A stretch of 64,000 bases of DNA from Podarcis melisellensis. Taxonomy: Eukaryota. The DNA lies in the NCBI GenBank assembly GCA_964234715.1, contig OZ174284.1; one strand, 5' to 3'. The notes under the pieces were generated by a model. It was given only the letters and a program-made list of their open reading frames with translations, was not told where the DNA came from and made no database searches. The stretch's first letter is position 1. The number at the start of each line of letters is the position of its first letter. Position numbers and translations under genes: made by a program. Positions 8,501-55,305 of the stretch are shown one piece after another.

Positions 8501-11500
8501 TGTGCTTTTCGAAAGCTGTGAACGACAGAACTGCTGTCTCCCACAATATGGTGATTTTGGAAGAAGATGCTTCTGGAATCAGGGCTAGCATCGCTATATA
8601 ACTAGAATAGGATGCAGGGTTTTTTGCCCCCTAATCATTGGAAAAGCCCCCACCCCACCCCAAATGAGAGAGCATGAGACAGAACAGCAACTTCCTGTTG
8701 CACAAAAGACCAGAGAGGTATATTGCAAAGCTCTGCTCTCTAACAATGACATCTCAGAACTGTCCTACCATCAAACACATTACAAACACAGATTACACGG
8801 CCTCCCATCTGAACAACACAGACTGGAAACTATCTTAACGTTGTATTGTAGGCTACGCCTCCTTTACCCCCCACCCGAGCTCCCCTGACTTACCTAAAAG
8901 TATGCATACAACATGCACACACATTTCACAGTGGTTTGTGTGCGCCTGCCTGCCTGTTTGAATAAACACAGTAATTGAGTCAGGCTTCCAAAGCCAATGA
9001 TTTTTCTAGGAACTAAATATTTGACTGTGAAATGTTATGGACTATAAGGAGACTTTGCTCCTGTCATTCCCATGCCTCTTATACCTCCTTTATGCTTTCC
9101 TTTTCCCAACTCTCATCTGTATCTCTAGGCTAAGGTGCATCTTAATACCAAAGACCTATGATTGAACCTCTCAAGTGTTTCTTGCTTAGGCTTAAAGCAG
9201 CCATGGGAAGGAGGAATTTTATCATGGCTGCAGAAGGGTGGAGGTTCAACCCTTTCCTGGTGCTTCCTTCCCAATATGTGTATTCCCACCGAAAGCTTCT
9301 TTTTAGGCATAAAGGGGGAAAATTGGTCCCTGCAGTGCTTCATGCTGAAGACTGACCTCCACCCATACAGCTCTCCTATCAATCCACAAACTGGCTTTGG
9401 GAAATGAGAGGATTGCAGTAAATGCACCTTCCCACTTTCCCCAAATGACCCTGCCAGAGTCTTGCAACAAGACAGGATGTCAGGTACTGGCTGTAATATG
9501 CCTTTTAGCAATTGCATTATTCAGCAAAGAAACACATTAGCCTAAATCCAAATCAGTTATCTGCTAGCTAACAAGACTTAGCTTATGGCTCAAAGTCTAA
9601 ATTTCATCCTGTTAAAGAGTAAAGGTGGCCATGATAATAGTGCAAATTGAACCAACAGAGTATGAACAATTAATTAAAGGGTGTTGATGGGTTTGCCATA
9701 GTCTCAGGAGTCACCCAAAGGGCATTCCAAGCAGAGATGTATGAGAGGTTACTCAGTGATGTATGCACCACAGCAGTTGGTAGCAAGGCAGAAAGAAGCT
9801 TGGCACCAAGTGAAAGACGCCTGGCACCCGGCTGTGAATAAGGAGGACATGGCAGAAAAGCAAGGCGCTGTGCTGCAGACAGTGCAGCCCTTGGCTGTGA
9901 AGCAAAAGAGGCTGGCACACTAACAAGGATGATGATGCAGTCGATAGCTGAAACAGAAGCAGCACGGAGGAGAAATGTTGCACATAAGAGCAATAGGCAG
10001 TCACCAGTGACAGTCAGAGGCATCTGTGACATACTGTCCACATACTGAATAACACATTGCCCTACATCTGACAGCACCATCCACTAAGAACATAAGGGAG
10101 TTGGTGGGTTATGGGAATAACAGAATCCAAGTTGCAGAGGGGCAAATTCTCCCACTTCTATGGAATGATGTTTGGCTAGCAAGGAATCCTTCAAATCTGT
10201 TCTTAATCTCTTCTGCCTATCATGAATTGCACAGAAAAATAGGCCACACATTAGTCCTTCCTGTCTACAAATCTAGCTATATGTACACTGTGAAGCTACT
10301 CTCAGTCCACTTTATTCAGGTGGCAAATGTGCACCACGTGCACACAGGACTTTTGAGCTGTAAAATCAACCTTTCAGAGGGAGCCAAAGTCCTTTGCCAC
10401 ACCCATTGAGCCCCCAACCAAGAGCTTTAAACAGTTTTATACTTGGCAAAATAATAACTCATTCCACAAGGCTTTACTTTTGCTCTCTGCTTACAGCAAA
10501 TCACAAAAACTAACACCTGCCTTTAAGATAAAACTATATATACTCTCAGCTTCCCTCTCACAAACTACTATGCAAGTGGAGCTTATATCTTAGTAGAGAG
10601 AAACATCAGCATCCTCTCTGGCTTTAGTCATGGCTCTTCATGATATTCTACACATTCTTTATCCAGAACAGAACTCCCCATGTCCAGTTCTTGCACATTT
10701 GCTCATATGGTTAGATGGAAGGGTCACAGAGACAGTAGAAGGGCATGGCTTGTTCCACAACCCTGTATATATTCTGGGATGTGATCTCTATAAAGGCAAT
10801 TGCCCCTGCCTTTGTTGTAGAACAGTTAGGTCACACAAGAGTAGTTCTATGGTCCAGAGAGAGGGAGGGGCGCAAGATTCCCCCTGCCCCTAGGCAGCAC
10901 CCTGCGATTGGGGCTTGTACAAAGGGAGAATTGAACTTGAGCTAGGGAGATTGCAAATCATTGTTTCAGATGCTGCTACTAAAACAAACAGATTGGATTG
11001 ACCTGCAAATTGCTACATAAATGAAAAGCACACAATAAGCATTACATAACATTATGGTAAAAATCAGTACAAATAAAGCTAGTTAACTGGCCAACCAATA
11101 GATTTCAATTACCAGTTTTCCATGGGAAGATATTATTAAGCAAAGTTATTTCCAAATCAGTAAGAATAATACAAAGGCACAATGCAAATCCAGGTGCTTT
11201 TAACTGAAAAGGCAAATTGTTGGGCTGAAAGGCTACCCTGAACCCCACTTTACTTTAAAAGATGGTCAGGCTGGCATGCGCTCATATCCCCACCCCAATA
11301 CACAGTTCAGAAAGCCAAACAAAACATTAATATCCTTATTCTGCATGTGACAGAAGGGTGAGGGCAGTTCCTTGGGTAACCTGCAGCTGCTGAAGAAAAC
11401 ATCAACTACCACAAGCCCTTTCTTTCTATTTTGTTTTCTCAGAGAAAACATTCTAAGGCCATTGTTTTCCACACCACTACTGGTAGCCTAAAACACATGA

Positions 11501-19231: not shown

Positions 19232-21130
19232 TCAGACATCAGACTCAATACTGGAAAGTTTCTCATAAACNNNNNNNNNNNNNNNNNNNNNNNNNNNNNN
19301 NNNNNNNNNNNNNNNNNNNNNNNNNNNNNNNNNNNNNNNNNNNNNNNNNNNNNNNNNNNNNNNNNNNNNNNNNNNNNNNNNNNNNNNNNNNNNNNNNNNN
19401 NNNNNNNNNNNNNNNNNNNNNNNNNNGAAGTCTGGCCTGGCCTTGGGCCCTCCTGCCACCACAGGCTGCCTGAAGAAATAGGATTTGCTGCCGTGGAGCA
19501 AGCACTGGTCATCCCCAAAAGTGGGGATGAAAGGGTTTTGAGTGACCCGGTCGGGGTAGAGCGACTTGCTGAGCATATAACCACCACTAATGCCAGGATT
19601 GTTGTGGTGGTGGTGGCTGGTGGCGGGCACTGAGGACTTGTTGTTGGCAAAAGTGGACTCGCTGGCTGGCATCTCAAACATGTGGGCATAGGGGCTTCCC
19701 TCCAAAAAGCGGCCCTTGTCCTTCAGGCTGACGCTGCGGGGGGCCAGGGCGGCGTCTTCCTTCTGCAGATCCACAAAGGTGTCGTAGGAGTGCTGCCGGC
19801 GTAGCTTGTTGCGATTCTTCTTCTGCACCTTGGAGGCAGAGTTGGAAGGGCTCTGAGGATACTTGGTAGTGGAGGTGCTGGTTGCCACGGGCACAGGAGC
19901 AGATGGCTGATCCAGCTCTTGGAGGGAGTTGTCCTCACTGATGTCGTAGAGGTTTCCGGCCTTCTTGCAGGCTTCACACCGGATGCATGGCTGGCGGGTG
20001 GAATTCTGACCCACCACGGTCGGAGTGTAGTTATGCAGCTTTGATGGGCAACTGCGGCAATAGTTAGCGCCAGGGCGTTCCTCCCAATCGAGATTGGTGA
20101 GGTTTTTCTCCCATGGCGCTGGTACCCCACTCACAACACTGTGCTTGTGCTCATTGTTTGCTCCAAACTCCCCCGACCCGTGTTTGTGGTGGGTCCTGTT
20201 AGTACATGTCCCTGCTCCCCCTATAGTGTCACGCTTGAAGTCATCTCCCCGCTCTTTATAAATATCCGTCAGATCCACATGTTCCCAGTGCGGTGAGTTC
20301 TCCTTAGCCCGGAACTGGTCCAAATAGAAATCCCGTAGCCCTTCCTTGTCCCTAAAGTAGCGCTTGTGGTCAGGGGAACGGGGACGCCGGCGATAGGCCA
20401 GTTCAATCTCATCAAACTCTCTCCGTGACTTGGCCGAGGCTGGCCGCTTCTTTAGACTATCTTTATACTGCTGTTTTCGCCGCTTTGCAGCGTTGCCCTC
20501 AATGTTGCCATAAGTCACGGTATGAGTCGATATGTCCGAGACATCTGAACGAATCAAATCGTCGTGTGCCCCTCCACCGCTGTATCGGTCACTCTTGAAA
20601 GACAACTTGCCATAAAGGTCACCTAACTGGCCATGTTTGGCCGGCGGCAAACCGATATCTAATGGCTTCTTACTGAGAGATCGAGGCTGTGCGGAGAAGG
20701 GTGGATTATCACAGTCATACAGTCCATCGATGGAGCTGGCGCTCCCTATGCTATGGGGGCGATGGTGATGATGATAATGGTCTTGGTAAACATTGCTTTC
20801 TTTCAGCTGCAGATTACCAAAGGTCCTTTCCACCTCACTAATATAATCACTGAAGAGGTTTTCCTCGCAGGGGGGGTTGTTATAAGACTTGCAGTCGGAA
20901 TGAGTGAAGCTACGGCGGTGCTCAGAGATATCGTAGACAGAGGATTCGCGACGGATAAAATCCAGGGCACTTTGTGGTGAGCCATTGACACCTGAAAGGT
21001 TTGCCATGTTCTTTGCTGTTCGGAGCAGGCGCAAAATGTTGGAATGGGTATTGTTCATGGTGGCAGTGGGGGAGTTCATGGAAGAATGGCGGTCCTCGAT
21101 AGCCACTCCGTGGATGCAGCTGTAAATACC
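19232..21130 (-). CDS. GRIN2B: GRIN2B last coding exon (cytoplasmic C-terminal domain) through the TGA stop
   Basis: [12 protein letters not shown]...[11 protein letters not shown] (CaMKII site)...[12 protein letters not shown], with the AP-2 YEKL motif and PDZ ligand typical of GluN2B. Acceptor ttgcag|GGT. Contains an in-frame 156-nt N run. Confidence 0.98.
19271..19426. other. N run, 156 nt, inside the last GRIN2B coding exon
   Basis: Seen directly. Exactly 52 codons, frame preserved. Confidence 0.99.
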
Positions 21131-22568
21131 CTGCAATGGGGGAAAGCAAAGGGAGGTTAGCAGAGGAGCATTCCAGCAGGGGAGATACAGAGCTTGGAGG
21201 ACTGAGACAAAGAACCTTGTCCTTTGCTAAATAGGATCCTCAGTGGGATATCATTGGGAGATGAGACAATCTAGACACTATCATAATGGTTCCACTTTTA
21301 ATCTTCCTCCACCTTTGCCCCTCTATCCCTTGCCCTTTCGTTATTAAATTGAAATAAATCTAGAAATTTATTCAGACCTTTATTGAAGTGGTTTGGTTTT
21401 TTTAGACATGGTTGCAGATGTTTCTTACAGATCAGATGCTCAGAGTGCTGTGGTCAGGAGTACTGTTTAAGGGTTACACCTTAAGCACTAGCTGCAGGAT
21501 TGGATCACAGTTTTCCAATGCCCTGGTAAGCACTTCAGACAGTTTGTAATCATGCACATGAGATTATTCTGAATCTCCAACTACTGCAGATAGGCCATTA
21601 GACAAGCCTTTGATCCACAGCACTTGTTTACATTTAGTTTCTAGGCATGATTCAAGGAGGTACTTCGTACTTAGAATACCTAAAAGAGTCCAACTCCTTC
21701 CTTTGCAAATATTCTTTAGCTTACAGATTTTGGAAACGGGTCTGAGGAAACATATAACCAGTCAGAAATTTGAGGCTGTCAGGACATGACTTTTAGAGGT
21801 ACAACATATTGGTTCACTTGGCACAGTTTCCTGACCCTCTGCATAGCCTCTAGTCATTGTTATTCATCTTGATTACAGACTCTGACCCACAATTGCTGTA
21901 TGAGTTCCAACTCTTTCTCCCTAGTCCTGATAAAGAATTGTATAAATTAGGAAGTTGTACAAAATAGATTTTCCCAACCAGAATTATGCTGTCTTAATAC
22001 TTTGTCTGAGATTGACTCTTTTGGTCAAAGAATTCCGCATTTTAAAAGCATCCTAAAAATGGATCAGAGTTTTACAATTAAGAGCCTAGTCTGTTAAGCA
22101 AAGAAAGTAATGATGAAAAAATCCACATTTTAACAATGAACATTTACACTGTCAACTCCAAATCATCTTTAATCCTAGGAACTCAAACTGATTAGTTTAT
22201 TAAGTAAAAGGCAGCTTATGCAGGAGCATCTGATTCCTTAGTGCAGCATCACACAATGTAATAATATTAGCTGGGATCTGTCAATGCAGCCTTGTGCAGT
22301 TCATAATCTCTAACTGGACAGAGAAATGAACTTGTATATTTTTCACAGCTCACGAATTGGAGTGATAAGCAGGGCCTTCTTACTGGTGGTGCCCTGGCTA
22401 TGGAATGCCACCCCTCAGGAAGTTCTGCTTGTGCTTTAATTGTTTAGTTTTTGCTACTTTGAAAACTCATCTCTTTCTGCAAGCATTTGGAAATAATTGG
22501 ATTTTTCAGGCTCTGATCTAATGATAGCTGCTGTTTTAATGTTTTTAATGTAGTAATATAATTGTGTG

Positions 22569-22571
<3 letters not shown>

Positions 22572-22624
<53 letters not shown>
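22572..22624. repeat. (GA)n microsatellite
   Basis: Seen directly. Confidence 0.98.
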
Positions 22625-22625
<1 letters not shown>

Positions 22626-23324
22626 CAGACAGACAATTTGTTGTGTAGCTATTGTATGCTGCCATGAGATTGTTACTGCTGAAGGGAGATTTTAAAAATC
22701 TACTAAATAAATGATAATATTTGAAATAATGAAAGGGAAAGAATTTTGGAATTCAAGGAAATTCATACAGAAATTATTTGCTAGAGAGAAAGTTTCTGAT
22801 CTAAGAGTCCTTTGTTTCTGTCAGTAAAATCTACTCAGAAACATGGGAGGGGGGAGTTACCTAAAAGTCAGAGTTCTACACAATGTTCTGCTCCAAAGAA
22901 ACCCCCCTTCTTGTTTTGAGTCTTTCATTATGCTTCTCCAAGACATTTACTCTGAAGCAAAGCTGAAATAGTGGCCACTCTCCAACCCCTGAACCAACAC
23001 TTGAGAAAGTATTGCTGTACCATTCAGAGACCAGGTCCTGCTTCATCCAAGGACCTCTTATAGTGCTGCTTGAAACAGGTGGCTTCCACCTGCTGCCTGG
23101 CAAGGATGCTCTTGTTCTTTCAGATAAATTACCAAGAATTACAGAAAACCTTTTCACACCTTGTTGAAGAAGTGGCTGAGGCCACTGTCCCAAGAATTTA
23201 GATTCTCCCAACCTTTCAAAGTTCCATTTTCTTTTCCTAGAGGCCAAATGCCTCTTACATAGAGGCCAGAAATGACAGCCATAGGCACAAGGGGAAGTAA
23301 TGAGAAAGGCTAGTTTGAGGTCTA

Positions 23325-23750
<426 letters not shown>

Positions 23751-27482: not shown

Positions 27483-28016
27483 TAGAATGCTCACGATTCC
27501 CATTGGCTGAGTCCACTGGCGTTACCAGTCTCAGGAAGCAAGTTTAGACATGCACAACAATATCCATTAGTTCACCTTTTTACTTTCTCCTATATAAATT
27601 GATTGCTGCCATTTTTTTCCTAGGGAGGAAAGTAAACTGCTGCATTTGAGGATATTGGTACAGTAAGGGGGCAAAACTCTTCCCCAAAACTGAATGGCCT
27701 ATCTCATACTTGTTGGGGTCTCATTGTGTGTGCAGTGGGGGGTGCAATGAATGTTTGTAAACAGAAGTACAATATATTACATACAACCTCATGAGTCTTT
27801 AGTATATACAAACTCCCTTCCACTCATGATCATGACCGAGATTTTACTTGCCGTTCTCTTCTGGGACCCAAAGGTAATAATAAATAAAGAATATAGAAAA
27901 ATACAGCTGATACAGAAGGGACACCATAATTACACTGGAACTAAAACTAACAACATCATCTGAAAGCCTACTTGGTCCTAATGATTCTCTGAACATTCAG
28001 CTGGCATGGTCTGAAA

Positions 28017-28147
28017 CAGGTGTTGGAAACTCCCCCCCCCCCCCCAATGTTGCTGAACTTCAACTCCCAACAATAAGAGCTGGTTACCAGGAATGATTGG
28101 AGTTGAACTTCAGCAACCTCTGGAACTCCAGAGGTTGTCTACATCTG
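28017..28147. mobile_element. Degraded palindromic hAT-type MITE; similar relics near 24600-24690, 37170-37305 and 43039-43166
   Basis: Fold-back gttgctgaacttcaactcc...ggagttgaacttcagcaac with cagg...ctg ends. Confidence 0.6.
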
Positions 28148-29794
28148 GTCTACAATCTAAATCAGTGAGATCCACATGTATCATCCATTTTAATTTATGT
28201 AAATTTAAAATTGCCTGCCATTGAAGTGGAATTGAAAAAATACAGTGACTCGTCTTCCTACTAAACATTATAGCATTTTATGGAAATAATTTCTCAAAGA
28301 AATAGTATGATCTATTGCAAGAGCTTCAAGTTATAAGTTCATGAATCAAAAATGTTAATGCAAGATAATGATTTCTTAAGAATGTTTTGCACATTTTCCT
28401 AAAGGGGAAGACAGAAGTTTACAAATACTTCTGGGAAGTATTTTCCATATCCACAAGCCCCCTGCAGAATAAGTATGTCTGCGTTAATTCCCTCTGCTGC
28501 CTTCACTTTCTTCACATAATGGATTTTGAGTAAAGGGGATTCTAATCCCCGTCTTAATTTGATATGTTGAACAGTTTCCATACATCATCCAGTCAAAAGC
28601 ACTGCTGTGAGTATTCACATTGTTTAATAATATGCTCTGTGGCTGATTCAGAACAACACTTCTTCAAGCTTCTGTACCCTCCTCTTCATTGAGGACATCA
28701 TTATCTAGACCCACAGTCAGAAGACCCTTGAGAAATTCCACTTCAATAAGTTTTGACCCCACCATCGAGATCAGACAAGAGCATTCCATGCACCAGGTTC
28801 ACTTTGGGCAAATACTGTGTCCGGTAATGGTCATATACATAATCACCACTGTATACTGAAAAAATGCTGAACACCTCTCATATCTCTACATTGTCCTAGT
28901 TCCTACCCAGAACATACCACAAGGCCCATCGTCTATGTGAAATTTAATCTGTTTTAGTATTTCAAATTATTGTATGTTCTAATGTAATGCATTTTTTTCC
29001 TGATCTTATGGAAGAACTGGAAGAAAGAACAAGATCTTCAGGGTCCTTGCTTACTGTGGGCATTCTTAAGCAGATGATTACAGAGCAAACAAAAGTCATT
29101 CAATAAAAATAGAAGTATTAGAGGAAAAATAGATACAAAATTGACAAGATTAGAAGGAGCTGACAATGAAATGAGGAATGAAACTAAACCAGAGAGGATT
29201 GAAATGGAAAATGGGAACAGAAATTACCTAGAGGATCATTTCTCAGATATCCCAACAATACTTGTATGGAATTTAATCATTTTCATTGGGACGGCAAAGT
29301 TTTAATCCTTCCCCACCCATGAGTCTGACAAAAATGGCCCTCCACCACAATTAGTATTACAAAAAGTTTCCCATTGGCACTAATGGAGCTTGCTTCCAAT
29401 GCTGATTGCAGTTTAATGTTGGTGTTCTGTGATTGGGGAGGAAATAGTTAATTGTCCCCTCTTTGTGCATTGTGGTTCCAATAAAACACACACCCTCCTT
29501 CCATGCTGGGTGGCAATTTTTCAAAAATTTGTAATCCATGCAATTATTGTCTGTTTTGGCTATGAGACAGTAATTTCTACCTTCCAGGCTTACAACAGGT
29601 GTTAATTAACATAGCAAAGCTAGGGTGATTGTGTTATCCCCAATTACTTGTGTTATGAATGGTCACTTAGCTTATCTTAAGCTTCACACAGAATTTTTAC
29701 AGACCGCACTTTTTGCAACTCATGGGAATATGGCTCCATCTATAACCTCCACCCACATGTGCATGTGTGGCCACACAACTGAATATAACACTTC

Positions 29795-29890
29795 ATGCAT
29801 CTGACAAAGTGAATTCTAGTCCATTAAGACTTATGCCATAATACACCTTTTAATCTTTCAGGTACCGCAAGACACTAGGTTACTTTTTTC
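29795..29890 (+). mobile_element. Heavily decayed Penelope-like terminal repeat fragment
   Basis: atgcatctgacaaagtg...ttatgccataata...aggtaccgcaagac resembles the PLE terminal unit, but the hammerhead core is destroyed. Confidence 0.5.
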
Positions 29891-31242
29891 TGTAGCAGAT
29901 TCACAAAGCTATTTGTTTCGAAGATGCTTCCAGATCTTTTCTAGGACCGCTGGCATCTCCCTTCATTTGAAGTGATGCTCCTCATTCCACAATGTATTGA
30001 ACAGACCATATCTAAAGGCAGCAAAGTTTAACTGATGGCTACAGTACAGAGAACATCTCACTCTCACTCCTCTTATTTTATTTTGGCAGAAAGGGGTAGA
30101 AAATGGGATGGCAGCCATCTTGCAGGCCCCTTGCTGCTCCTGGTAAATTCATCCCTCATAAAACTCTTTTCAGGCTGAACTGCTGTAAGATTTTATATGC
30201 TACTTGGTTTACCCAAGTCACAATCAATGCTTTCTGGGGTTTTATGAGCAGTAAACTTTAGCACTGACAATTACGAAAACTCCTTAAAATCCATACACAG
30301 AGAAATAGTGGTGGGAAAAGTGAGCCGAGATGTAAGCCAAGGGCCCAAAATCAGAATTAAGAGGTGGAAATTATGCCAGGGGCTTTCAAGTAAATGGAAA
30401 ATTCCCACCTCTCTGCTGCAGAGGGCATTTTGTGTGGCTTAGTAGCTACTTTTGCCAATCTAATAACGGGCACAATGAAGGAGACAGTGAAAGTTGCTTA
30501 ACAGTCAAACCTGATATTGATATTGTAGCAAAAATATCACACCACATCTCTGAGCAGTGTGAGATTCCAGGGGTCAGGCACTTACCCGGGGTTTGTGTTT
30601 CCTTTAGCAATGAGGCATTGTGGAGAATGTGGTGTCTTTATGATAATATGGTTTATTGACAAATATATACCACCTGAGCTATGATGGAGGGGCTTTCAGC
30701 ATTACACACTGAGAGGGTCAGACAGTCAGCCCACATTGCTCTGACACCCGCTTTTTCCAGCTCACAAAATGCAACTATCTTTCCTCTTGCTTACATCAGG
30801 CAAAAACTCTTGTCCTGAATACAACTGCTCTCCTTCCAACTCTAAAACTCTACTTCAGAAACGGTTTGTCTTCATAAATAATTCTGAGTTGAGAAAGAGG
30901 CCCCTCCCATTTGCTCTCTGGCACTGAGCCACTCCCTTTGTCCCAGCTAATGACTCATCATTAGTATGCTATCACCAGGCTGGCCCCTGGCTTGTATTTC
31001 AACATGCTAAATTCAATCAGCGCTGGATTCAGGGAGGTGCAGGTGGTTCCCCCATAAAGGGTGCCAAGACGAAACAGCACAAAATTGAGAAGATCCATAA
31101 TTGAGAAGATCCATTTTGGGTCACCAAATTTTGGCTTTGTACAGAGCACCATATGATGAAAGATGACCAAAGTCTGTCTCTCATTCAGTGTCTGGCATCC
31201 CAAAGTTAGGAGGGGAGTCCAGGAACCCCACAAACTTGTAAC

Positions 31243-31516
31243 CATTGGCGTAGCAAGGTCAGGTGTTACCAGGTGTGGAAAATATCTTGTAACCTCTCCC
31301 CCATTTATAACCAGCCTGCAATAATGGTCTGACTCTTTTGGGGAGAGCCAGATTTGTTGAGCTTTTCTGGGGAACGTTTTGGCAGTGGGAAGCCTGTGCA
31401 CGCAAAAGCCACGCTGTCTCTCACAGACGCTGAGTGCCGCACAGCATTTTGTCACCCCCTCAGAGATGGCAGCCGGGGCGGACCACACCCAACACACCCA
31501 CCTTGCGACGCCTTTG
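31243..31516. mobile_element. Non-autonomous hAT element, 274 bp
   Basis: Imperfect TIRs CATTGGCGTAGCAAGGT / ACCTTGCGACGCCTTTG. 8-bp TSD cttgtaac at 31235-31242 and 31517-31524. Confidence 0.85.
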
Positions 31517-32294
31517 CTTGTAACCATCTAAACTATGGGCCTATGCGGTGCACACACAGTAAACTTATCTTACATGGAAACAGCAGTTACATGAAAACTA
31601 TACTAGGGTTGCCATATTTCAAACAGTGAAAATCTGGACAGAAAAGTATTCCATATATGTCTGGGGAAATCCAGATGTATGGCATCCCTAAGTATACAAC
31701 ATCACTTCCTACTGTAAAAAACATCAGACTGCCAATGTGTACATATAGTTCAAAACCTAGAGCTCATTGAAAATAGCTGTGATCCTTACCAACAGGGGTG
31801 GTACATTTTTCTGTGGTAATACCAATACCTTCTGCTGGCAGAACAGGTAAAATCCCCACCAGTACTGTGCAGAAATGTGCATTAAGGAATACTGAGGATG
31901 GCACGAGCGTTTCTGTGCTGCTAATAGGTGGATGGGGGGGAAAAACATTTACTGGAATACAGGACATTAAAAAAACTTAGACATGATAAGCCTGATAAGG
32001 TACATTGCACAGAACACAAGAATACATTGCAAAGGGACAAAATAAAAACCTTTTAGAAAGGCAAAGAAGGCTTTGTACCTGTAAGTCATTCCAAATCAAT
32101 AGTACTTAGATGTGCTTTACTCTGCACAGTAGTGGGTAGGTAGGTGTGGGAAGGGGTGTGGGATCACATGTGTTGCAAAGTATCATGCCACATTTTATTG
32201 CCATATATAAAGTGCAGGCTAAATCCATGATCCCAGCACTCAGCCCAAGCTACCCTAGGAATAACCAACAATGGGCTACATGTATGTTTGCCAA

Positions 32295-33076
32295 GGTTAT
32301 GCAGATGACACAACCTTGATGGCAGAAAGTGAAGAGGAATTAAATAACCTTTTAATGAGGGTGAAAGAGGAGAGCGCAAAATATGGTCTGAAGCTCAACA
32401 TCAAAAAAACGAAGATCATGGCCACTGGGCCCATCACCTCCTGGCAAATAGAAGGGGAAGAAATGGAGGCAGTGAGAGATTTTACTTTCTTGGGCTCCAT
32501 GATCACTGCAGATGGTGACAGCAGTCATGAAATTAAAAGACGCCTGCTCCTTGGGAGAAAGGCAATGGCAAACCTAGACAGCATCTTAAAAAGCAGAGAC
32601 GTCACCTTGCCCACAAAGGTCCGTATAGTTAAAGCCATGGTTTTCCCAGTAGTGATGTATGGAAGTGAGAGCTGGACCATAAAGAAGGCTGATCGCCGAA
32701 GAATTGATGCTTTTGAATTATGGTGCTGGAGGAGACTCTTGAGAGTCCCATGGACTGCAAGAAGATCAAACACATTCATTCTTAAAGAAATCAGCCCTGA
32801 GTGCTCACTGGAAGGACAGATCATGAAGCTGAGGCTCCAATACTTTGGCCACCTCATGAGAAGAGAAGACTCCTTGGAAAAGACCCTGATGTTGGGAAAG
32901 ATTGAGGGCACAAGGAGAAGGGGACGACAGAGGACGAGATGGTTGGACAGTGTTCTCGAAGCTACAAACATGAGTCTGACCAAACTGCGTGAGGAAGTGG
33001 AAAACTGGAGCGCCTGGTGTGCTCTAGTCCATGGGGTCACGAAGAGTCGGACACGACTAAACGACTAAACAACAAC
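32295..33076 (+). mobile_element. BovB (RTE-clade LINE), 5'-truncated, 782 bp, covering the RT C-terminal part
   Basis: Open frame YADDTTLMAESEEEL...KRRLLLGRKAM...VFPVVMYGSESWTIKKA...FELWCWRRLLRVPWTARRSN. (CAA)n tail. 11-bp TSD atgtttgccaa at 32284-32294 and 33077-33087. Confidence 0.95.
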
Positions 33077-35077
33077 ATGTTTGCCAATACACTGAGCCAG
33101 CTCGTGTTCCTAGGGCTGTAGAATCCAAATCTTGAAGATATGAGCTCCAGCATCTTTTTAAAGAATTGCTAATTGTTCAATCAATGGCAATTGTACCTCT
33201 GCAACTTGCAACCACTCCTATCCTCCAGGCACCGTATCCAGCTCTGCAGTCCAGTGCAGAGAAATCTTAAAAATTAAATGCAAAGATCCATAGGATACAC
33301 AAACCCTGAGATCTTTGGCTGCAGACTTGACAGGAACACACATAAATATTCATCCCTGGTCTGCAGGTTTTGTGTTTGTAACACTGAAGGGAACTAGCTG
33401 CCACTCACGTACCCATGGGGCCTAGAGGAGTGAAGGAAGAGACTGAAGAATATGCCTTATTTTTTCACAGAAATTATTCTATCAGAAAACACCCCCCCCC
33501 TGAAGAATAGCCTCATTTCTGCCCCTAATAACTAGTGATTTGGACCAATTCATTTTGAGCCTGTAATACCTGCAAATGCAATAAGCCTTAAAGGGCCAGG
33601 AAAAGGGCGGGCTGTGAAAAGAATTTGTGACTCTGCTGCTGCAGAACTGGGAAAATTAGTGAAAGAGCAGGAAAGTGGCTTCCTTCCCCTCCCCCAGAAA
33701 GCCTTAGCTGCCTATCAGGGCCTGGTGCATACCAGGTCATCATAGTACTTTTGCCAGGCCAGGGAGCTAGAGGCTGGAGGGAAGTCTGGGCATGGTGAGG
33801 CAGAAACAATTCAATGGCAGAAACAGCAGGAAGACCCCAAATACGGAAGCTTTTAGGGGATGGGCAGGGCCAGTGCGGGGTGTGGCCTGTGAAGAGGGTA
33901 TGTGACCAGGGAGTGGGTGTGGCTTAGGGAGAGTCCTGTGAATCTGATAGGCCTGGAAGACCACATATTGCTCCTAGGCCTGAGGTTCTTCACCTCTGAC
34001 ACATAGGGTGAATGCCTCAGGACCCATTGCAGGTTTGAGTACCTTAACACTTTCAAATGGAAAGCAAGTATGTCCTCTTGCTAATAGGAAATACGTAGAA
34101 GGTGGGTTTTTAGGAACTCTCGGATGTTCTGAACTAGGAATGCTTAAGAATTCTGTTTCATTTGCATTTTTTAAGCAAAGCAACCAGATGTACAAATTGA
34201 AACAAAGTTATCCTTTGGTTGTCACACTCCTCCAAACATTCTGGTCCTGTTCTCAGCTCAAAGAACTACCAAAAAGCCTATTAAATTGTGTACTTTAGGC
34301 CAAAGTGCACACAAAATCATATATTTTAGGATAAAAAGTATATTTTATCTAAAGATATGTAAAAAGATGTGTGTCCTGTGAGGAAATAAGTAACAAAGAA
34401 TGCAGATTTCCATGCAGATTTATGAAGAACAAGAGAGAAGGCACTTACGAATGAACACCACCCAACCATTCCTTCTCAACACCCTTCTCTCTCCTCTGTT
34501 GGAAGACAGAACTGGGTGTGTCATGTGGCTTGTCATGCAACCCCTGCACTTAGGCCTGTTATCCTCAGGTGCAGTGGAGGATGCCAATATTGAAGTAGAA
34601 TTCCACTGCTAGTCCAGTCCGCTTCTGAACACGGAATCAGGAACAGTTCATAATTCTATGCATTTACCTGACAGGGTGATGCTGCAGTGATAGCTTCCAA
34701 ATAGGAGCATCACTGCTGCTTACAGGGATGGGAAGGGGCAAGATGGCAGCAAGGTTGGTGCTGTGCAGCCACACTGGTAGAGCCAATCCAGTGTTCCCAC
34801 CTATGCATCCACACAGCCCCAGCCTTGCTGGTGCCTCACCCCTACCAGTGTGTGGCAAGTGATACTGCTATCCAGAAGCTATTGTGGCAGCTCTGCTCCA
34901 CTGGGCAAGCCACACCTGCATGCAGTTGGTGTGTGTGGATCATCTTTTTTGCCTCAGGCAGCAAAATGTCTTGGGCCAACTTAACCATCAATCATTATTC
35001 TGAACTCACTTTAAAAAGGAAGAACAAATGTGTTCTAAAGAAACATCAAAGTGTAACATTGCAAAGAATAAACATAT

Positions 35078-35165
35078 AAAAAAATTGTCCAGTAGCACCT
35101 TAGACACCAACTAAGTTTGTTCTTGGTATAGGCTTTCATGTGCTTGCTCACTTCTTCAGATACAC
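35078..35165 (-). mobile_element. Penelope-like element terminal fragment with a minimal hammerhead ribozyme remnant
   Basis: Minus strand GTATCTGAAGAAGTGAGCAAGCACATGAAAGCCTATACC...TTAGTTGGTGTCTAAGGTGCTACTGGAC, containing the CUGANGA...GAAA core. Confidence 0.75.
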
Positions 35166-38017
35166 AAAGGATACTTTTGCGGTTCATATAATTGAAGCCA
35201 ATGTCTTGGAAAAAACAGAATCAGTTTACATTCTTTGGCAAGTTATTCGTGAGGCAAAAAAGAATAGATGCAGCATTATTTAGCTATAGCTGCTCTTCTA
35301 GACACACAGGGGAAGCAGCTTTTTAAAATGAAAGTGTCGCTTTTTAAAGTTTGTCTTTAAACAGTGAACAGAATTTTACATGGCAATTTAACAAGGAAGT
35401 TTGCATCTGGGGGATATTCAGCAGGGGTAAATGTTTGGTGCAGGAGGTGTTTATCTTGCAGTTTTGTCTAGTTTTATCATATCTGCTGTGGACTAAATTA
35501 GTGCTGACTTAAGCTTAACCACAAGGCTGTGGTTTTGAGTTTCCATAAAGCAGTACTCCTGTTTTGCTAGGTGAAGATAACCTCGGGGCTTATTCAAACT
35601 CCTGGAAGGAACATGATAGGCAATATTTGATTTCAACAGCTAAATATAATATTATTGATTTCTGATGTTCATAGTGCTATCAGCAATATCTAAATAAAAC
35701 AACAAAATTGGCAACAATATGATTGCAGGGAAGGAATGTGGCTATGATAAGTTTTGAAAATACAGCTTTTCAAAATACAAAAAACAAACAAACCCAGGCT
35801 TTGTGCAATTATCAGAGTGCCAGAGCTCCCAATTCAATTGTTTTCCAAACACCCTAGAAATTTGAAGTTTGGTTATCCCCCAGACCTATGAAAAAACAGT
35901 TGGTTAATATTTCATCAACCATTTTGGTTATTATTATTAAGTCTCTATAAATCCCTCACTAAAGTCCTGTTTAATGTGAGTTAATGAAAGTCATTCTGGA
36001 TAAGATATCTGGAGTTATTTTCTTTTGCTCACTCACCTGCCTGATAGATGCCACTCCTGCCCAACTGTAGCATGTTACTTACATCTCAATCAATCCTACA
36101 ACCCAACCCCAAATACATTCATGCAGGAGAAGGTCCCAATGTGTTCTGTAAAATGTACTCTCTGGTAAATAAATAAGTTTAGGGGTTCAATCGAAAGGCT
36201 ACTGTCTTTGTGAGAAGAAAAGAAGCTTTCTTTTACTTTTGTTTGTTTGCCACTTGATCTGCCCCTCATTTTTTTCATTATTGTCTTCTAATGAGAAGTT
36301 TGTTGTTATTAGGAATTTACAAAGCTGCCTTATACGAGTCAGACCAATGGTCCATCTAGCTCAGTATTATCTACGATGGTTGTAGCTCCCCAGGGTTTCA
36401 GAGTCTTTCCCAGCCCTACCTGAGGGAGCTGAGGAGCAAACCTGGCACTGTCTGCACACAAAACAGATGCAGGCACCAAGAAATCCAGTGAGGGATGTTT
36501 TCCTTCTATACTGATGCATCACACACTCAAATGCTGCACCTGTTGCTTCTCTACCTATCACAAAGCTCTGAAACACACAAGAGCCAGTAAACAAAACAGG
36601 CAGAAACTCCCTTCATCTGTAATTTAGCTTAGTAAGTTCTCATACATTTTTGCCCTTTTGTGAGCTTAAATGGGAATTGCTGTAGCTACGGGTGGCACTA
36701 AATGGCCAAGGGGAAGGGGACCCACCAATTTCCTTGCAGCCAAGGGCCCAAAAAAACTTGGAGTCGAGCCTGTCTATACAAAAGTCTATATGAAGGAGGA
36801 ATATTTCATCTTCCAAATGTTGACATGCGTAACTCATGTTGCCTCCAGTGTGCTGAATGTCCCAAGATATGCAACCACATTGCTCAGTGAACTAGAAGCC
36901 ATCGTGTGTCCACAATACCCCCTTTTGATATATTCCTTCTGACAGGAATTTGAGATGGATAGGATCCACCATGTCCTCATCATGAATCTCTGACAACGAA
37001 TTTCAACTAAACTGTCACTCCACTTTTTATGTTCTACATAATGATGTTGATAGTGTGCTATCTATTATCACTGATGCTTGTTTCCTGTCTGGATTAGAAA
37101 ACACTTCCCAAATTCAGTGTTCATTTATCTTGTAGGAGTTTTAAACTAGTTTCATGATGTAATGCATTGCAGGGGTGGAGAACCTGTGCTACTTCAGGCC
37201 TTGTTGACTCTTAACTTTCATTAGCCCCAGCCAGGATCTTGGATTGTCAGAGACAATGGGAATTGTAGTCCAACAGCATCTGGAGTGTCATAGGTTCCCA
37301 TGCCTGCTATAGCACCTCAAGGCTGTAAGAAAACACTGCATTTTTTAAAAAAAATCAAACCTGGTTTCCCTTATTTCCCCTGACCTTGCATAACCCCTGC
37401 AGTTTCAAAGTGTTACCCCCTGTATTGTTTTCAACACACATTAACTATGTAGTATGGATTACTGCAGAGGGTGCCAACCTTGGGGGGGCAGTGGCCATAT
37501 CTAGAATTTTGAGGATGTTCCGTGGGTGTGTCCCAAAAAGGCTGCCATGGAGTGTGGCACAATAAAAAAATGGCTGCCACATCTAAAAGAGCAGAAAAAG
37601 CGAAAGGACCACAAAATTACTTAGGCATCTCCCCCCCCCCCCCCGGGGCCTCCAGTCAAGAGGTAGAAGGGCACCTGCATTAGTCACCACCACATTCAGT
37701 CACAGAGGAAAGCTCTTTGCACCTCTCCTCTGTTCAGATTTTTCTATTATTGTCTCTTGCAGTTATTACTGTTGTGAATTGCTTTGGTATTCACTGAATG
37801 AAAAGTGGCATGATGATGATGGTGATGCCTGGACCTCCATTGTAACCTATCAAGGAAGCTAGACTGGATTACCTTTGAAGTCCCTTCCTGTTCTATGATT
37901 CTATAATTCAGGAGGGAGGAAGCTTTCTGACTCCAAGGTCCACACTCCCTCATTGCTAACCATCCAGAGTCCATGCGTCAGCAGCGGGAAGGGCCATACC
38001 CTCATACATAACCCACA

Positions 38018-38024
<7 letters not shown>

Positions 38025-38098
<74 letters not shown>
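38025..38098. repeat. Compound (TC)n(AC)n microsatellite
   Basis: Seen directly. Confidence 0.98.
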
Positions 38099-38099
<1 letters not shown>

Positions 38100-38790
38100 A
38101 TTTTCCCAGAATTAAAAGTAAAAATTGGTCAGAAGGTATCCAAATTGGAAATTGAATCTGCAAGAATGCCACACAATCCCTAATCAAGATATATGTGGGT
38201 GACTGTCTAAATCTGATCCCTGGAAGAAACCCCATGCAGAGGTGTATTCTAAGAAATTTTCCAGACGATTTCCTCAAGAAGCCAATGTTAGGCAGAATCC
38301 TGATTTGAGACCTCATGAGTCCCAAGCTGGCTGAGTTTACTTAGGGCATCTCCACACAATACATTTAAAGCACATCTAAAGTGCATGGCTTCCCTGGAAA
38401 CTATAGTTTACCTCTCACAGAGCTATCATTCCCAGCACCCACAAAACTACAGTTTCCATGAGTCTTTGAGGGAAGCCATGTGCTTTAAATATAGCATCAA
38501 CTTTTGTCACTATTTCCCTCAGAAATGCAGATTCTGAATCATCCTCTCAGATATACCTTTACCAGATCCTAAGTAAGAAATCAAAGCCAGGAACTCAAAG
38601 CAAACTCTGAGACTTTCACTTCTTCCCTGTTAACGGTGAAACATATTACCAAAGTGCTTCCTGAGTAAGCCACTTCCGATCCTGGGGAGGAGATGGGGTG
38701 GCGGGCTTCACGCCCATCCCACATGCGCGGGGGCTGGCTTCAGCCCCCGCGAGACTGAGGGAATCCTGGCTGCATCGCCCACCCAGCCAG

Positions 38791-38860
38791 CCAATCGGGT
38801 GGCTGGGGGGCGTGGCCTGCCCTATTTAGGGCCGGCGCGGCCGGGGCTCGCCCTCTTTTC
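38791..38860 (+). promoter_or_regulatory. Pol II core-promoter-like array within the element
   Basis: CCAAT 38791-38795, GC box ggggcgtggc ~38807-38816, TATTTA 38823-38828, pyrimidine initiator ccctcttttc 38851-38860 about 30 nt after TATA. Confidence 0.55.
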
Positions 38861-38952
38861 GCCGCGCCAGCCAGCTGATTTTCCCACCCTCCCTCCCTTT
38901 AGGTAGGCTCCTGACATTGCTATGGGCTTCGGTCGGTTGCCACAAGGGGCCT

Positions 38953-39006
38953 GGTAGGAATTTTTTTTCCAATTGGCGATTTCAACCAATCGGTTTTTCA
39001 CCTACC
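38953..39006 (+). ncRNA. ENE-like cis RNA structure (U-rich internal loop between two helices)
   Basis: GGUAGG-AA-U8-CCAAUUGG-loop-CCAAUCGG-U5-CA-CCUACC. Confidence 0.55.
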
Positions 39007-39929
39007 TCATAGCAACTCATCACAACTCCTCGGCATTGGCGGTTAGGCATTGGTAAGAAGGGTTTAAGAGGATGGGGGGGGGGAACGCCATCACCTCCCC
39101 CCAAAAGCTAAGGGTAGTCCGTTAAAGGATTCCGGGGTGTGTGTGGCCCTGTCCGAAACCTATGGGGGTGTGGGCCTAAGGCACGCCCCCGAGCGGTGAC
39201 CCGGGGGGAGCTCCTAGTTGACGTGCCTCAGCAGACTCCCCCTTCTGGTGTTAACCCATGCCGGTCTTCATGCAGTCGTGCTGGGGCCGGTTAGTCGATA
39301 GGACCAATGCCTAAGCCAATACCTCTCATTCCTGAAATCAATATAGTTGTGGCCTAATTTGCCCATTTAACCTTAATACTTGGTGTCCTATGTCATTATT
39401 TCTCCTTCCTGTGGGGGGCGGAAACTTGCCACGCAAATGTTGGTGCACTGGTGTTCTCAAATATGACTTGTGCTTGGCACCAATATTTTAATAGTTGTCA
39501 CTGTAAATTGTAGTCAGTGATATCACTGAGTTGGGAATAAGAAAAGAAATAATTAGCAAGGAACTCTGAGATTAAAAGAACATAAAAAGAAGCTAAAAAT
39601 AGCAAGTTTAAAGAAGGTTGTTCTTCTAAAATGGCTAAAATCATAGCAGGGATCTAATTAGCAAAGAAATCTTCCATCACATTTTGTCACATGCAGTAAA
39701 GTGCACATAGTAGGTTCAGTAGCTTGACTGAACCTCCATGCAGAATTCAAATTTATGCAATCTCTGCGTTAACTAGACTGTTTAGTGATTCAGAACTACA
39801 CAACCTCTTCTCTGACTGTATTGAATCTCTGATCAGAGCAGCTTCCTGCAACCAAGTTACTACATAGGCTCTGCATTGACCTTGTTGCTAGGCTACATCA
39901 TCCCTTCACTGCATAAAAATTGAAGACTT

Positions 39930-40477: not shown

Positions 40478-41245
40478 TGGACTGCCTGGTCCTGAATAGG
40501 GTAACTGAGCTTGTGAAGGACCAGGTGCGCAGCCTGGGAGTCATTTTGGACTCACAGCTGTCCATGGAGGCGCAGGTCAATTCTGTATCCAGGGCAGCTG
40601 TCTACCAGCTCCATCTGGTACGCAGGCTGAGACCCTACTGCCCGCGGACTGTCTCGCCAGAGTGGTGCATGCTCTAGTTATCTCCCGCTTGGACTACTGC
40701 AATGCGCTCTACGTGGGGCTACCTTTGAAGGTGACTCAGAAACTACAACTAATCCAGAATGCAGCAGCTAGACTGGTGACTGGGGGCGGCCGCCGAGACC
40801 ACATAACACCGGTCTTGAAAGACCTACATTGGCTCCCAGTACGTTTCCGAGCACAATTCAAAGTGCTGGTGTTGACCTTTAAAGCCCTAAACGGCCTCGG
40901 CTCAGTATACCTGAAGGAGCATCTCCACCCCCATCGTTCTGCCCGGACACTGAGGTCCAGCACCGAGGGCCTTCTGGCGGTTCCCTCATTGCGAGAAGCA
41001 AAGTTACAGGTAACCAGGCAGAGGGCCTTCTCGGTAGTGGCGCCCGCCCTGTGGAATGCCCTCCCATCAGATGTCAAAGCGATAAATAACTACCTGACAT
41101 TCAGAAGACATCTTAAGGCAGCCCCATTCCGGGAAGTTTTTAATCTGTGATATTTTAGTGTATTTTTGGTTTCTATGGAAGCCGCCCAGAGTGGCTGGGG
41201 AAACCCAGCCAGATGGGCGGGGTACAAATAATAAATTATTATTAT
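40478..41245 (+). mobile_element. L2-clade LINE, 5'-truncated
   Basis: ORF VHALVISRLDYCNALYVGLP...LQLIQNAAARLV...HITPVLKDLHWLPVRFRAQFK is typical of the L2 ORF2 C-terminus. 3' end gggcggggtacaaataataaattattatt. Confidence 0.9.
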
Positions 41246-44460: not shown

Positions 44461-44600
44461 GCAGTTAGCTCAGTTGGTTAGAGTGTGGTGCTGATAATGC
44501 CAAGGATGTGGGTTGGATTCCCATACAAGCCACATGCATTGCAGAGGATTTGCCTTGATGACCCTTGAGGTCCCTTCCAACTCTACTGTTCTATGATTCT
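44461..44600 (+). mobile_element. SINE with tRNA-derived head and CR1-like tail (second copy)
   Basis: tagctcagttggttagag...gataatgccaagg...ggtcccttccaactctactgttctatgattct. Confidence 0.75.
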
Positions 44601-54361: not shown

Positions 54362-54430
<69 letters not shown>

Positions 54431-54558
54431 TTATTATTTGTACCCCGCCCATCTGGCTGGGTTTCCCCAGCCACTCTGGGCGGCTTCCAACAAAGATGAA
54501 AGATACACTAAAATGTCACATATTAAAAACTTCCCTGAACAGGGCTGCCTTCAGATGT
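54362..54558 (-). mobile_element. Short L2 3' fragment with a (TTG)n tail, i.e. (CAA)n on + at 54362-54429
   Basis: Reverse complement matches 41108-41237; 62 nt are identical. Confidence 0.9.
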
Positions 54559-55305
54559 GTTTTCCCACAAGTGTGCCCTTTTAAGGCAACCAATTGGTTG
54601 TGGGTTGGTTTCAGTATTTGTGTACACACATATGTACACATACCTGCAAAACACTTTGGGTGTTGGGATCAGAGACGATGTACATTTAGGAACACCATAG
54701 GAGGCTGCTTTATGCTGAATTAGATCACTGATCCATCTAGCTCAGCACTGTGTACACTGACTGGCAGCAGCTCTCCAGGGTTTCAGGCAGGGATGTCTCC
54801 CAGTGCTACCTGCAGATGTCAAGGGTTGTCCCTGTGACTGAGCTGTTGCCCACAGATTTAGAGACTTGGAGAAAGGTGGCAAAAATCCTTTAAACTTTAC
54901 AGTTGTATATACTGGTGTTTCCCTTTGTGTTATTGCAAGGCATACCTCGCATCACCTCCTCCATCAAACACATGCTGAGAAATACTCTGGCAGTAAATGG
55001 ACCACAAGCAGCAGAAAACAACATTATTTCTATTGCTCTTCATTTCCTGCTTGTTCCAGAAAATATTTTTTCTTACATTTGCTTTTATATTAAAAAAAAA
55101 CCCATGTAAATATCATATAACTTCACAAATTTGCTTGGTGATAATTCCAAGATGATAATTTTTCCCAATGGCAAAATTCAAATTGCTACACAGATTTGGA
55201 AAGCATGACTCAATTTCTGCCGTATTATCCGGCCATAGGGGGGAAATAATTCATTCAGTCTGTTGGTGAGCCTGTAAGTAAAAGCAGGTACCTTTCATGG
55301 CTTAC

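Follow-up and report, generated by a model that had tools for sequence, protein, structure and literature searches.

[quoted passage not shown] ENEs borne by transposable elements (TEs) have been reported chiefly from plants and fungi (PMC12501189), where they are also known within TE terminal repeats (PMC13541005), and in the ENE of Arabidopsis Evade the G-C pairs right beside the U-rich domains are essential (PMC12501189). As to lizards, dozens of MALAT1-like triple-helix loci are known in anoles (Zhang et al. 2017, as cited in PMC10869381). In the window analyzed here (the whole stretch of squamate DNA, 64 kb in length), a preliminary description proposed a PAN-type ENE at 38917-39015 on the plus strand, which would lie in a mobile element and capture this element's own poly(A) tail. 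The only animal case of a TE-borne ENE is reportedly that of one fish species, said to have been described by Tycowski and colleagues in 2016. If the hairpin did bind poly(A), the protection of RNA by ENEs, described so far in viruses, in a few lncRNAs, and in transposons mostly of plants and fungi, would also occur in a retroelement active in an amniote. No other transposon family of amniotes would have been known to bear an ENE before (although the genome might contain several), and the evasion of deadenylation by mobile elements could be studied in a vertebrate that offers it naturally. What the evidence supports at present is mainly a lizard repeat, unclassified and high in copy number, whose insertion is clearly delimited and lineage-specific and which has a hairpin of ENE shape; this makes it a useful candidate for a genome-wide covariation test and not yet a result on RNA stability.

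Sequence and predicted fold of the hairpin

On re-reading the sequence base by base, all coordinates and letters given in the preliminary description over 38917-39015 were found to be correct, and the minimum free energy (MFE) fold of this segment returned every element that had been named, showing that the helix/U-loop/helix layout is real. On the plus strand, a lower helix formed by GGUAGG (38953-38958) and CCUACC (39001-39006) is followed by an internal loop with AA and U8 on the 5' side (38959-38968, the U's at 38961-38968) and U5 (38994-38998) and CA on the 3' side (38994-39000), and then by an upper stem-loop (38969-38993) in which CCAAUUGG (38969-38976) pairs across a 9-nt loop with CCAAUCGG (38986-38993). 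The upper helix has eight positions with a single A38971·C38991 mismatch in the studied copy. Above the loop, both U tracts directly adjoin two C-G pairs, whereas below it they are set apart from the first G-C pair by a 2x2 mismatch (AA/CA).

The MFE of 38917-39015 is -29.9 kcal/mol (z -2.36), and 4 of 200 shuffled sequences were equally stable. Partition-function folds were run in four contexts (99, 351, 769, and 1501 nt), in all of which the upper helix had a pair probability of 0.59-0.71 and the lower helix one of 0.62-0.75, while most loop U's were unpaired (0.63-0.99, mostly >0.9; 0.68-1.0 for the 3' side of the loop). The stem, U-rich loop, and stem-loop were present in both MFE and centroid folds. 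Considering that the probabilities of both helices are steady over the four contexts, the hairpin with its U/U loop is robust. The preliminary description had further placed it in a three-way junction, together with an outer helix of UUGCUAUG (38917-38924) and CAUAGCAA (39008-39015) and a side hairpin (38925-38951) of GGCUUC (38925-38930) and GGGGCC (38946-38951). Both were recovered in the MFE fold of the 99-nt segment, but their pairing depended on the context, with probabilities of 0.17-1.0 for the outer helix and 0.18-0.70 for the side hairpin, and the junction thus appears to be the weak part of the predicted structure.

The hairpin resembles the ENEs of KSHV PAN and of plant and fungal TEs in its stem, its loop with at least five U's on each side, and its upper stem-loop (Tycowski et al. 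2012/2016; Evade, PMC12501189). It also shares with them the G-C pairs directly above the loop and a maximum of five U·A-U triples, and, like the TE-borne ones, it resides within a mobile element, perhaps within a module resembling a terminal repeat. On the other hand, it differs from them in the lower helix being offset by the AA/CA mismatch, in the U8 of its 5' tract in the studied copy, in having no poly(A) signal nearby, in its squamate host, and in being known here from sequence and a predicted fold. Similar to MALAT1, NEAT1, and the MALAT1-like loci, it is a stem with a U-rich internal loop, in this case in a lizard genome; however, its U tracts have no C+·G-C / C-G interruption, and the insertion in which it lies contains neither the genomic A-rich tract nor the downstream tRNA-like (mascRNA) unit, cleaved by RNase P, of those loci. 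This last point had already been noticed and was borne out, as the only A run of the insertion is A4 and no tRNA or tRNA-like match was found in or beside it.

In a genuine PAN-type ENE, the U5-8/U5 loop would bind the poly(A) tail of the element itself through at most five U·A-U triples, so that deadenylation or 3' decay would be slowed. The layout is correct and robust enough for such a role, the number of possible triples and the G-C pairs directly above the U tracts are as expected, there is no A-rich competitor inside the insertion, and plant and fungal TE ENEs, including that of Arabidopsis Evade, offer a precedent. However, the U tracts are parted from the lower helix by the 2x2 mismatch exactly where Evade has its essential adjoining G-C pairs (PMC12501189), and searches of Rfam 15 with the window, a 2-kb segment, and a 131-nt segment (at the gathering threshold and at E<=10) returned no relevant family, which bears on an ENE as far as Rfam 15 models ENEs.

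Occurrence of the motif by chance

The descriptor that we wrote for the motif asks for five or more U's on either side of the loop, for an upper helix of at least seven pairs (at most one mismatch) directly next to the U runs, and for a lower helix of at least six pairs within 2 nt. With this strict descriptor, the hairpin at 38917-39015 was the one site in the 64-kb window, and dinucleotide-shuffled windows yielded 0.01 sites per window on both strands (0.16 and 0.38 with looser settings). It is therefore unlikely that the motif arose by chance within a single window. At the same rate, however, a genome in the gigabase range should contain hundreds of such sites by chance, and the hairpin was found by a reader searching for such a shape, so that the look-elsewhere effect is large and weighs against a genuine ENE. 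Moreover, a chance motif in the founder of a repeat family is multiplied together with the family. A pattern of the form GG(A/T)...TTTT..CCT(T/A)CC, which the preliminary description had ascribed to some CR1 3' UTRs, occurs once in the window.

The hairpin lies in a recently mobile, high-copy insertion

The region 38300-39700 was compared with contigs of low-coverage DNA runs from three species (organisms A, B, and E) and with raw RNA reads from organism E. In the unique flanks, depth was flat at approximately 36-38, 10-12, and 13.9 in the three DNA runs, whereas from 38668 to approximately 39385 it rose 100-1000-fold in all three species to 10^3-6x10^4, contig read depth here not being equal to copy number. 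A 1150-nt contig from organism E (run X9, record 17) joins 38666 directly to 39436 and thus represents the empty site, with a divergence of approximately 2.7% from the flanks. In organism B, a contig from the left flank extends 26 nt into the insertion. The DNA run of organism A showed zero differences from the flanks, which suggests that organism A is probably the source species. The empty orthologous site in a close relative, combined with the high depth, reveals that 38667-39435 (plus strand) is a recently mobile, high-copy element, and the earlier claim that the hairpin lies inside a mobile element is thereby confirmed. Such recent activity, seen in the empty orthologous site of a species only approximately 2.7% diverged, also counts in favor of a genuine ENE. 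The insertion comprises 769 bp, is non-coding (no ORF longer than 59 aa was found in it), and has a GC content of 58% and a CpG observed/expected ratio of 0.60, compared with 0.23 in the flanks.

We also looked for further copies elsewhere. Within the window, blastn with a word size of 7 and a repeat finder gave none that could be accepted; the segment at 29171-29230 (60 nt, 72% identity, E 0.23) consists of T-rich DNA and was rejected as a chance match. A word search with the insertion ORFs at 38822-39001 (minus strand) and 39139-39294 (plus strand) gave no candidate copy, and pattern scans of metagenome, viral, and prokaryote collections revealed no copy of the element. An exact 21-mer match to 39303-39323 in metagenome contig L001 (Ga0065722_104328, 11442-11462) is not a copy, as it was accompanied by no further similarity and is best regarded as chance. 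The last ~50 nt of the insertion (39386-39435) have a depth near the unique level, although the empty site shows that they arrived with the element; the 3' terminal part of the family seems to be subfamily-specific or variable.

Class of the element

The junctions read GAGT/AAGCC... and ...CGCA/AATG (the slash marking the joint), and the empty site reads GAGTAATG. Comparison of the junctions with the empty site gave no target-site duplication (TSD) beyond a shared AA, and neither terminal inverted repeats (TIRs), TG...CA ends, Helitron ends, nor a tail were found at the insertion ends. Elements of the DIRS order, Ngaro among them, integrate without TSD (PMC3266345), and an insertion with nothing beyond AA therefore fits a DIRS-order (Ngaro-type) tyrosine-recombinase (YR) retroelement. 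Besides TSD-less insertion, in which a 2-nt AA is shared between target and ends, the high copy number is a further likeness to Ngaro/DIRS elements. In contrast, split direct repeats (A1...B1A2B2), ITR/ICR, and an RT or YR ORF, by which those elements are recognized, were all looked for in the studied copy and not found. The first ~207 nt of the insertion (38667-38873) continue into a different sequence in a 1484-nt contig of organism E with approximately 9-fold depth (X9, record 18), which is what one would expect of an 'A' repeat with an internal region behind it. By analogy with these elements, it is probable that the insertion is a module derived from a YR retroelement or a non-autonomous relative of one, and the studied copy could be a partial module.

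Several other classes were considered and rejected. A solo LTR does not agree with the AAGCC...CGCA ends, which are not TG...CA, or with junctions that share AA alone instead of a TSD of 4-6 bp. A TIR transposon would need a TIR; a Helitron would be possible in its A/T register but not without TC...CTRR ends. A SINE or other Pol III unit is contradicted by T4 directly after the implied transcription start and by the lack of an A/B box and of a tRNA match. When the 150 nt at each end of the insertion were aligned locally with the remainder, no direct repeat scored above shuffled sequences, on which ground a mini-Ngaro with split direct repeats was also dismissed.

The hairpin in other copies of the family

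Other copies are known here from a per-site read-out of contigs and reads, and the effects of variants were argued base by base. At 38991, T is found in 91%, 63%, and 76% of the depth in the three DNA runs and in 20 of 20 RNA reads, which turns the A·C mismatch of the upper helix into an A-U pair. Many copies have G at 38985, opposite C38977, where it would add a ninth pair. A U5/U5 loop results where three T's are absent at 38966, as is the case for 13 of 21 RNA reads and 10-17% of the DNA depth. In the apical part of the side hairpin, the studied copy departs from the majority at 38934, 38938, and 38942. Among the variants listed at a share of at least 10%, a list shortened by 217 variants, none lies in the lower helix or the U5 tract, and we attach no weight to this. 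Because most copies have A-U at the mismatch, the hairpin is ancestral to the family, and because the majority variants pair better, the founder hairpin was better formed than the studied copy, which has decayed. The pair restored at 38991 and the one that G would add at 38985 thus reflect decay of the studied copy and not covariation, and they show ancestry rather than selection. A genuine ENE is nonetheless favored by the perfect upper stem of most copies and by the U5/U5 form that some have and the RNA reads carry.

The depth profile was further compared along the hairpin. In run X1, depth reaches 28,000-37,000 over GGGGCCUGGUAGGAAUUUUU (38934-38942), drops to approximately 5,000 where the 5' strand of the upper helix lies and further to approximately 900-1,100 over 38976-38992, and is back up by approximately 38995-39019 (an estimate from bin means; 16,758 at 39019). 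Many contigs stop at the T run or continue in related, shifted sequence (loose ends at 38965). Judged by depth, more copies seem to have the lower helix and the U tracts than the apical part of the upper stem-loop. A shared loop and lower helix with a variable apex is the pattern expected of an ENE, but fragmentation of contigs at a variable T run could also produce it. The low depth over 38976-38992 relative to 38934-38942 and the breaks and divergence at the T run would also be expected if the motif were pure chance in one decayed copy, with the family as a whole lacking it. This explanation is very improbable, since the helix is better paired in the alignable copies than in the studied one and the lower helix and T runs fall in high-depth blocks; in addition, a CCAAA..TTTGG-type hairpin with T's after it can still be made out in the loose-end consensus of organism E (weak, from five contigs).

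Over its full length, the insertion shows an unusual degree of predicted structure, whichever strand is folded (z -3.0 and -4.7). Its sole significant internal repeat is an inverted one (score 30, reached by 0 of 200 shuffles), whose CCAAT/ATTGG-rich arms lie at 39033-39055 (left) and 39303-39323 (right) and flank a strongly folded domain of approximately 250 nt. Such an extent of structure might point to a role of the hairpin in retroelement replication that involves no poly(A) binding, either in dimerization or packaging via the palindromic CCAAUUGG or as a strand-transfer or priming signal of a terminal-repeat module, and it would agree with this that most copies have an upper stem that is fully palindromic and that the hairpin persists in every context. 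However, the palindrome is placed in the stem and not in the loop, and both strands fold equally well, as inverted DNA repeats give anyway. We know of no precedent for such a structure in YR retroelements and consider the explanation distinctly unlikely.

A promoter-like module and the CCAAT boxes

Upstream of the hairpin, a promoter-like module can be read from the sequence at 38788-38830 (plus strand). It consists of a CCAAT box (38791-38795), a GC/GT box (38805-38817), and a TATA-like CTATTTAGG (38822-38830), in textbook order and spacing. If this module were a promoter, transcription would start near 38853, and the hairpin would lie at approximately +65 to +160 relative to that start; its distance from the insertion end is 420 nt. 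The pentamers CCAAT/ATTGG occur eight times in the 769 bp (10.4 per kb), a 4.5-fold enrichment compared with 2.3 per kb in the window, and three of the eight make up the upper helix. Moreover, 38983-38993 (CAACCAATCGG) agrees at 10 of 11 positions, in direct orientation, with the promoter-like CCAAT box at 38788-38798. Since CCAAT and ATTGG are mutually reverse complementary, RNA copied from a cluster of such boxes will fold regardless of any importance of the fold. Clusters of NF-Y CCAAT boxes in retroelement promoters and LTRs are similar to what is found here, with eight pentamers in the insertion and one of them in the canonical CCAAT-GC-TATA order, but they leave the flanking T runs and the GGTAGG/CCTACC helix unexplained.

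These observations point to the reading that we prefer, to which we would nevertheless give only an even chance, namely that the hairpin is an ENE look-alike made of inverted CCAAT boxes and T runs in a regulatory, terminal-repeat-like module of a mobile element. On this reading, the hairpin is genuine and was inherited from the founder of a recently mobile squamate repeat that is non-coding and high in copy number, and its upper helix consists of inverted CCAAT boxes that may act on the DNA as NF-Y-type promoter elements, sitting just downstream of the CCAAT/GC/TATA module and flanked by two T runs. As RNA, the boxes and T runs would fold into the helix/U-loop/helix with no poly(A) tail or A-tract placed for clamping, and we infer that the hairpin may have no role in poly(A) binding. 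The facing U runs are the one feature that such a DNA-level reading leaves unexplained, because a simple DNA palindrome would put T opposite A, and the CCAAT boxes therefore do not account for the U/U loop. Further points stand against the look-alike: the U's are predicted to be unpaired, without an A-rich partner anywhere in the insertion, and the majority hairpin is better paired, with U5/U5 in part of the copies as in canonical ENEs. The same promoter-bearing module can also be turned in favor of an ENE, since in a terminal repeat it would put the hairpin near the 3' end of the full-length RNA, as for LTR-embedded ENEs (PMC13541005).

Around the promoter-like module, approximately 80 RNA reads of organism E hold just the 54-nt CCAAT-GC-TATA segment (38782-38835) between two constant unrelated flanks (agreement 0.94-0.96), and in its DNA run the depth over 38770-38863 exceeds that of the two other species several-fold. 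Apparently, the module has been copied into another, expressed context in organism E.

Transcripts and the 3' end

The RNA data come from one run of one tissue of organism E, of which approximately 12% was read. In total, 360 RNA reads touch the 1.4-kb stretch, and 349 of them lie partly outside it. First mates are split about evenly between the strands, no preferred start or end of molecules stands out in these reads, and no poly(A)-like end is present among the loose ends listed. This is a picture of scattered read-through of many diverged copies and not of a dedicated stabilized transcript, although such a transcript may exist, as the RNA was sampled from one tissue of one species. Regarding the sequence itself, AATAAA, ATTAAA, and common variants were searched on both strands of the insertion, with AATATA at 39340 as the only match. 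On the present evidence, the hairpin is not found near a poly(A) tail or a 3' A-rich tract.

Of the PAN-type ENE in a mobile element that had been proposed, the layout and the mobile element have thus held, but a position near the 3' end finds no support on the present evidence: a poly(A) signal is missing and 420 nt separate the hairpin from the insertion end. The RNA run of organism E likewise contains no strand-specific or abundant transcript, and the offset lower helix and the Rfam result point the same way. Taking both sides together, we regard a genuine PAN-type ENE as a hypothesis that is rather unlikely; that the locus represents a recently active, TSD-less, probably tyrosine-recombinase squamate family with a working single-domain ENE clamping its own poly(A) tail is unlikely.

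Surroundings in the window

On the minus strand, 19232-21136 and 23322-23744 were identified as the last coding exons of a gene for an NMDA receptor subunit of GRIN2 type (NMDAR2_C, E 2e-174; end of Lig_chan). On the strand of this gene, the insertion lies upstream of the exons and is therefore presumably intronic.

Several other repeats were observed in the window. Just upstream of the insertion, 38347-38534 is a separate high-copy repeat with a depth of up to ~32,000 (run X1); nearly all its copies differ from the local one at 38459 and 38462, internal skip and 'goes back 140' joints are numerous in it, and Rfam gives a weak hairpin-type match (mir-3140, E 0.67). In appearance, this repeat resembles a MITE/SINE-like element or a short foldback. 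An ORF of 265 aa at 32271-33068 (plus strand) encodes a retroelement fragment, namely a reverse transcriptase in its C-terminal portion (RVT_1, E 2e-9); this ORF lies outside the insertion, has no YR or RNase H signal, and was rejected as part of the studied element. At 44464-44526 (plus strand), an Rfam tRNA match (39.7 bits, above the gathering threshold) that was not called by ARAGORN is probably the tRNA-derived head of a SINE. Inverted copies of another repeat are located at 41105-41243 and 54422-54561, 13 kb apart, with arms 87-97% complementary. Finally, 38025-38098 is a compound microsatellite, (TC)19(CA)18, which was paired by the repeat finder with a similar tract at 22563-22640.
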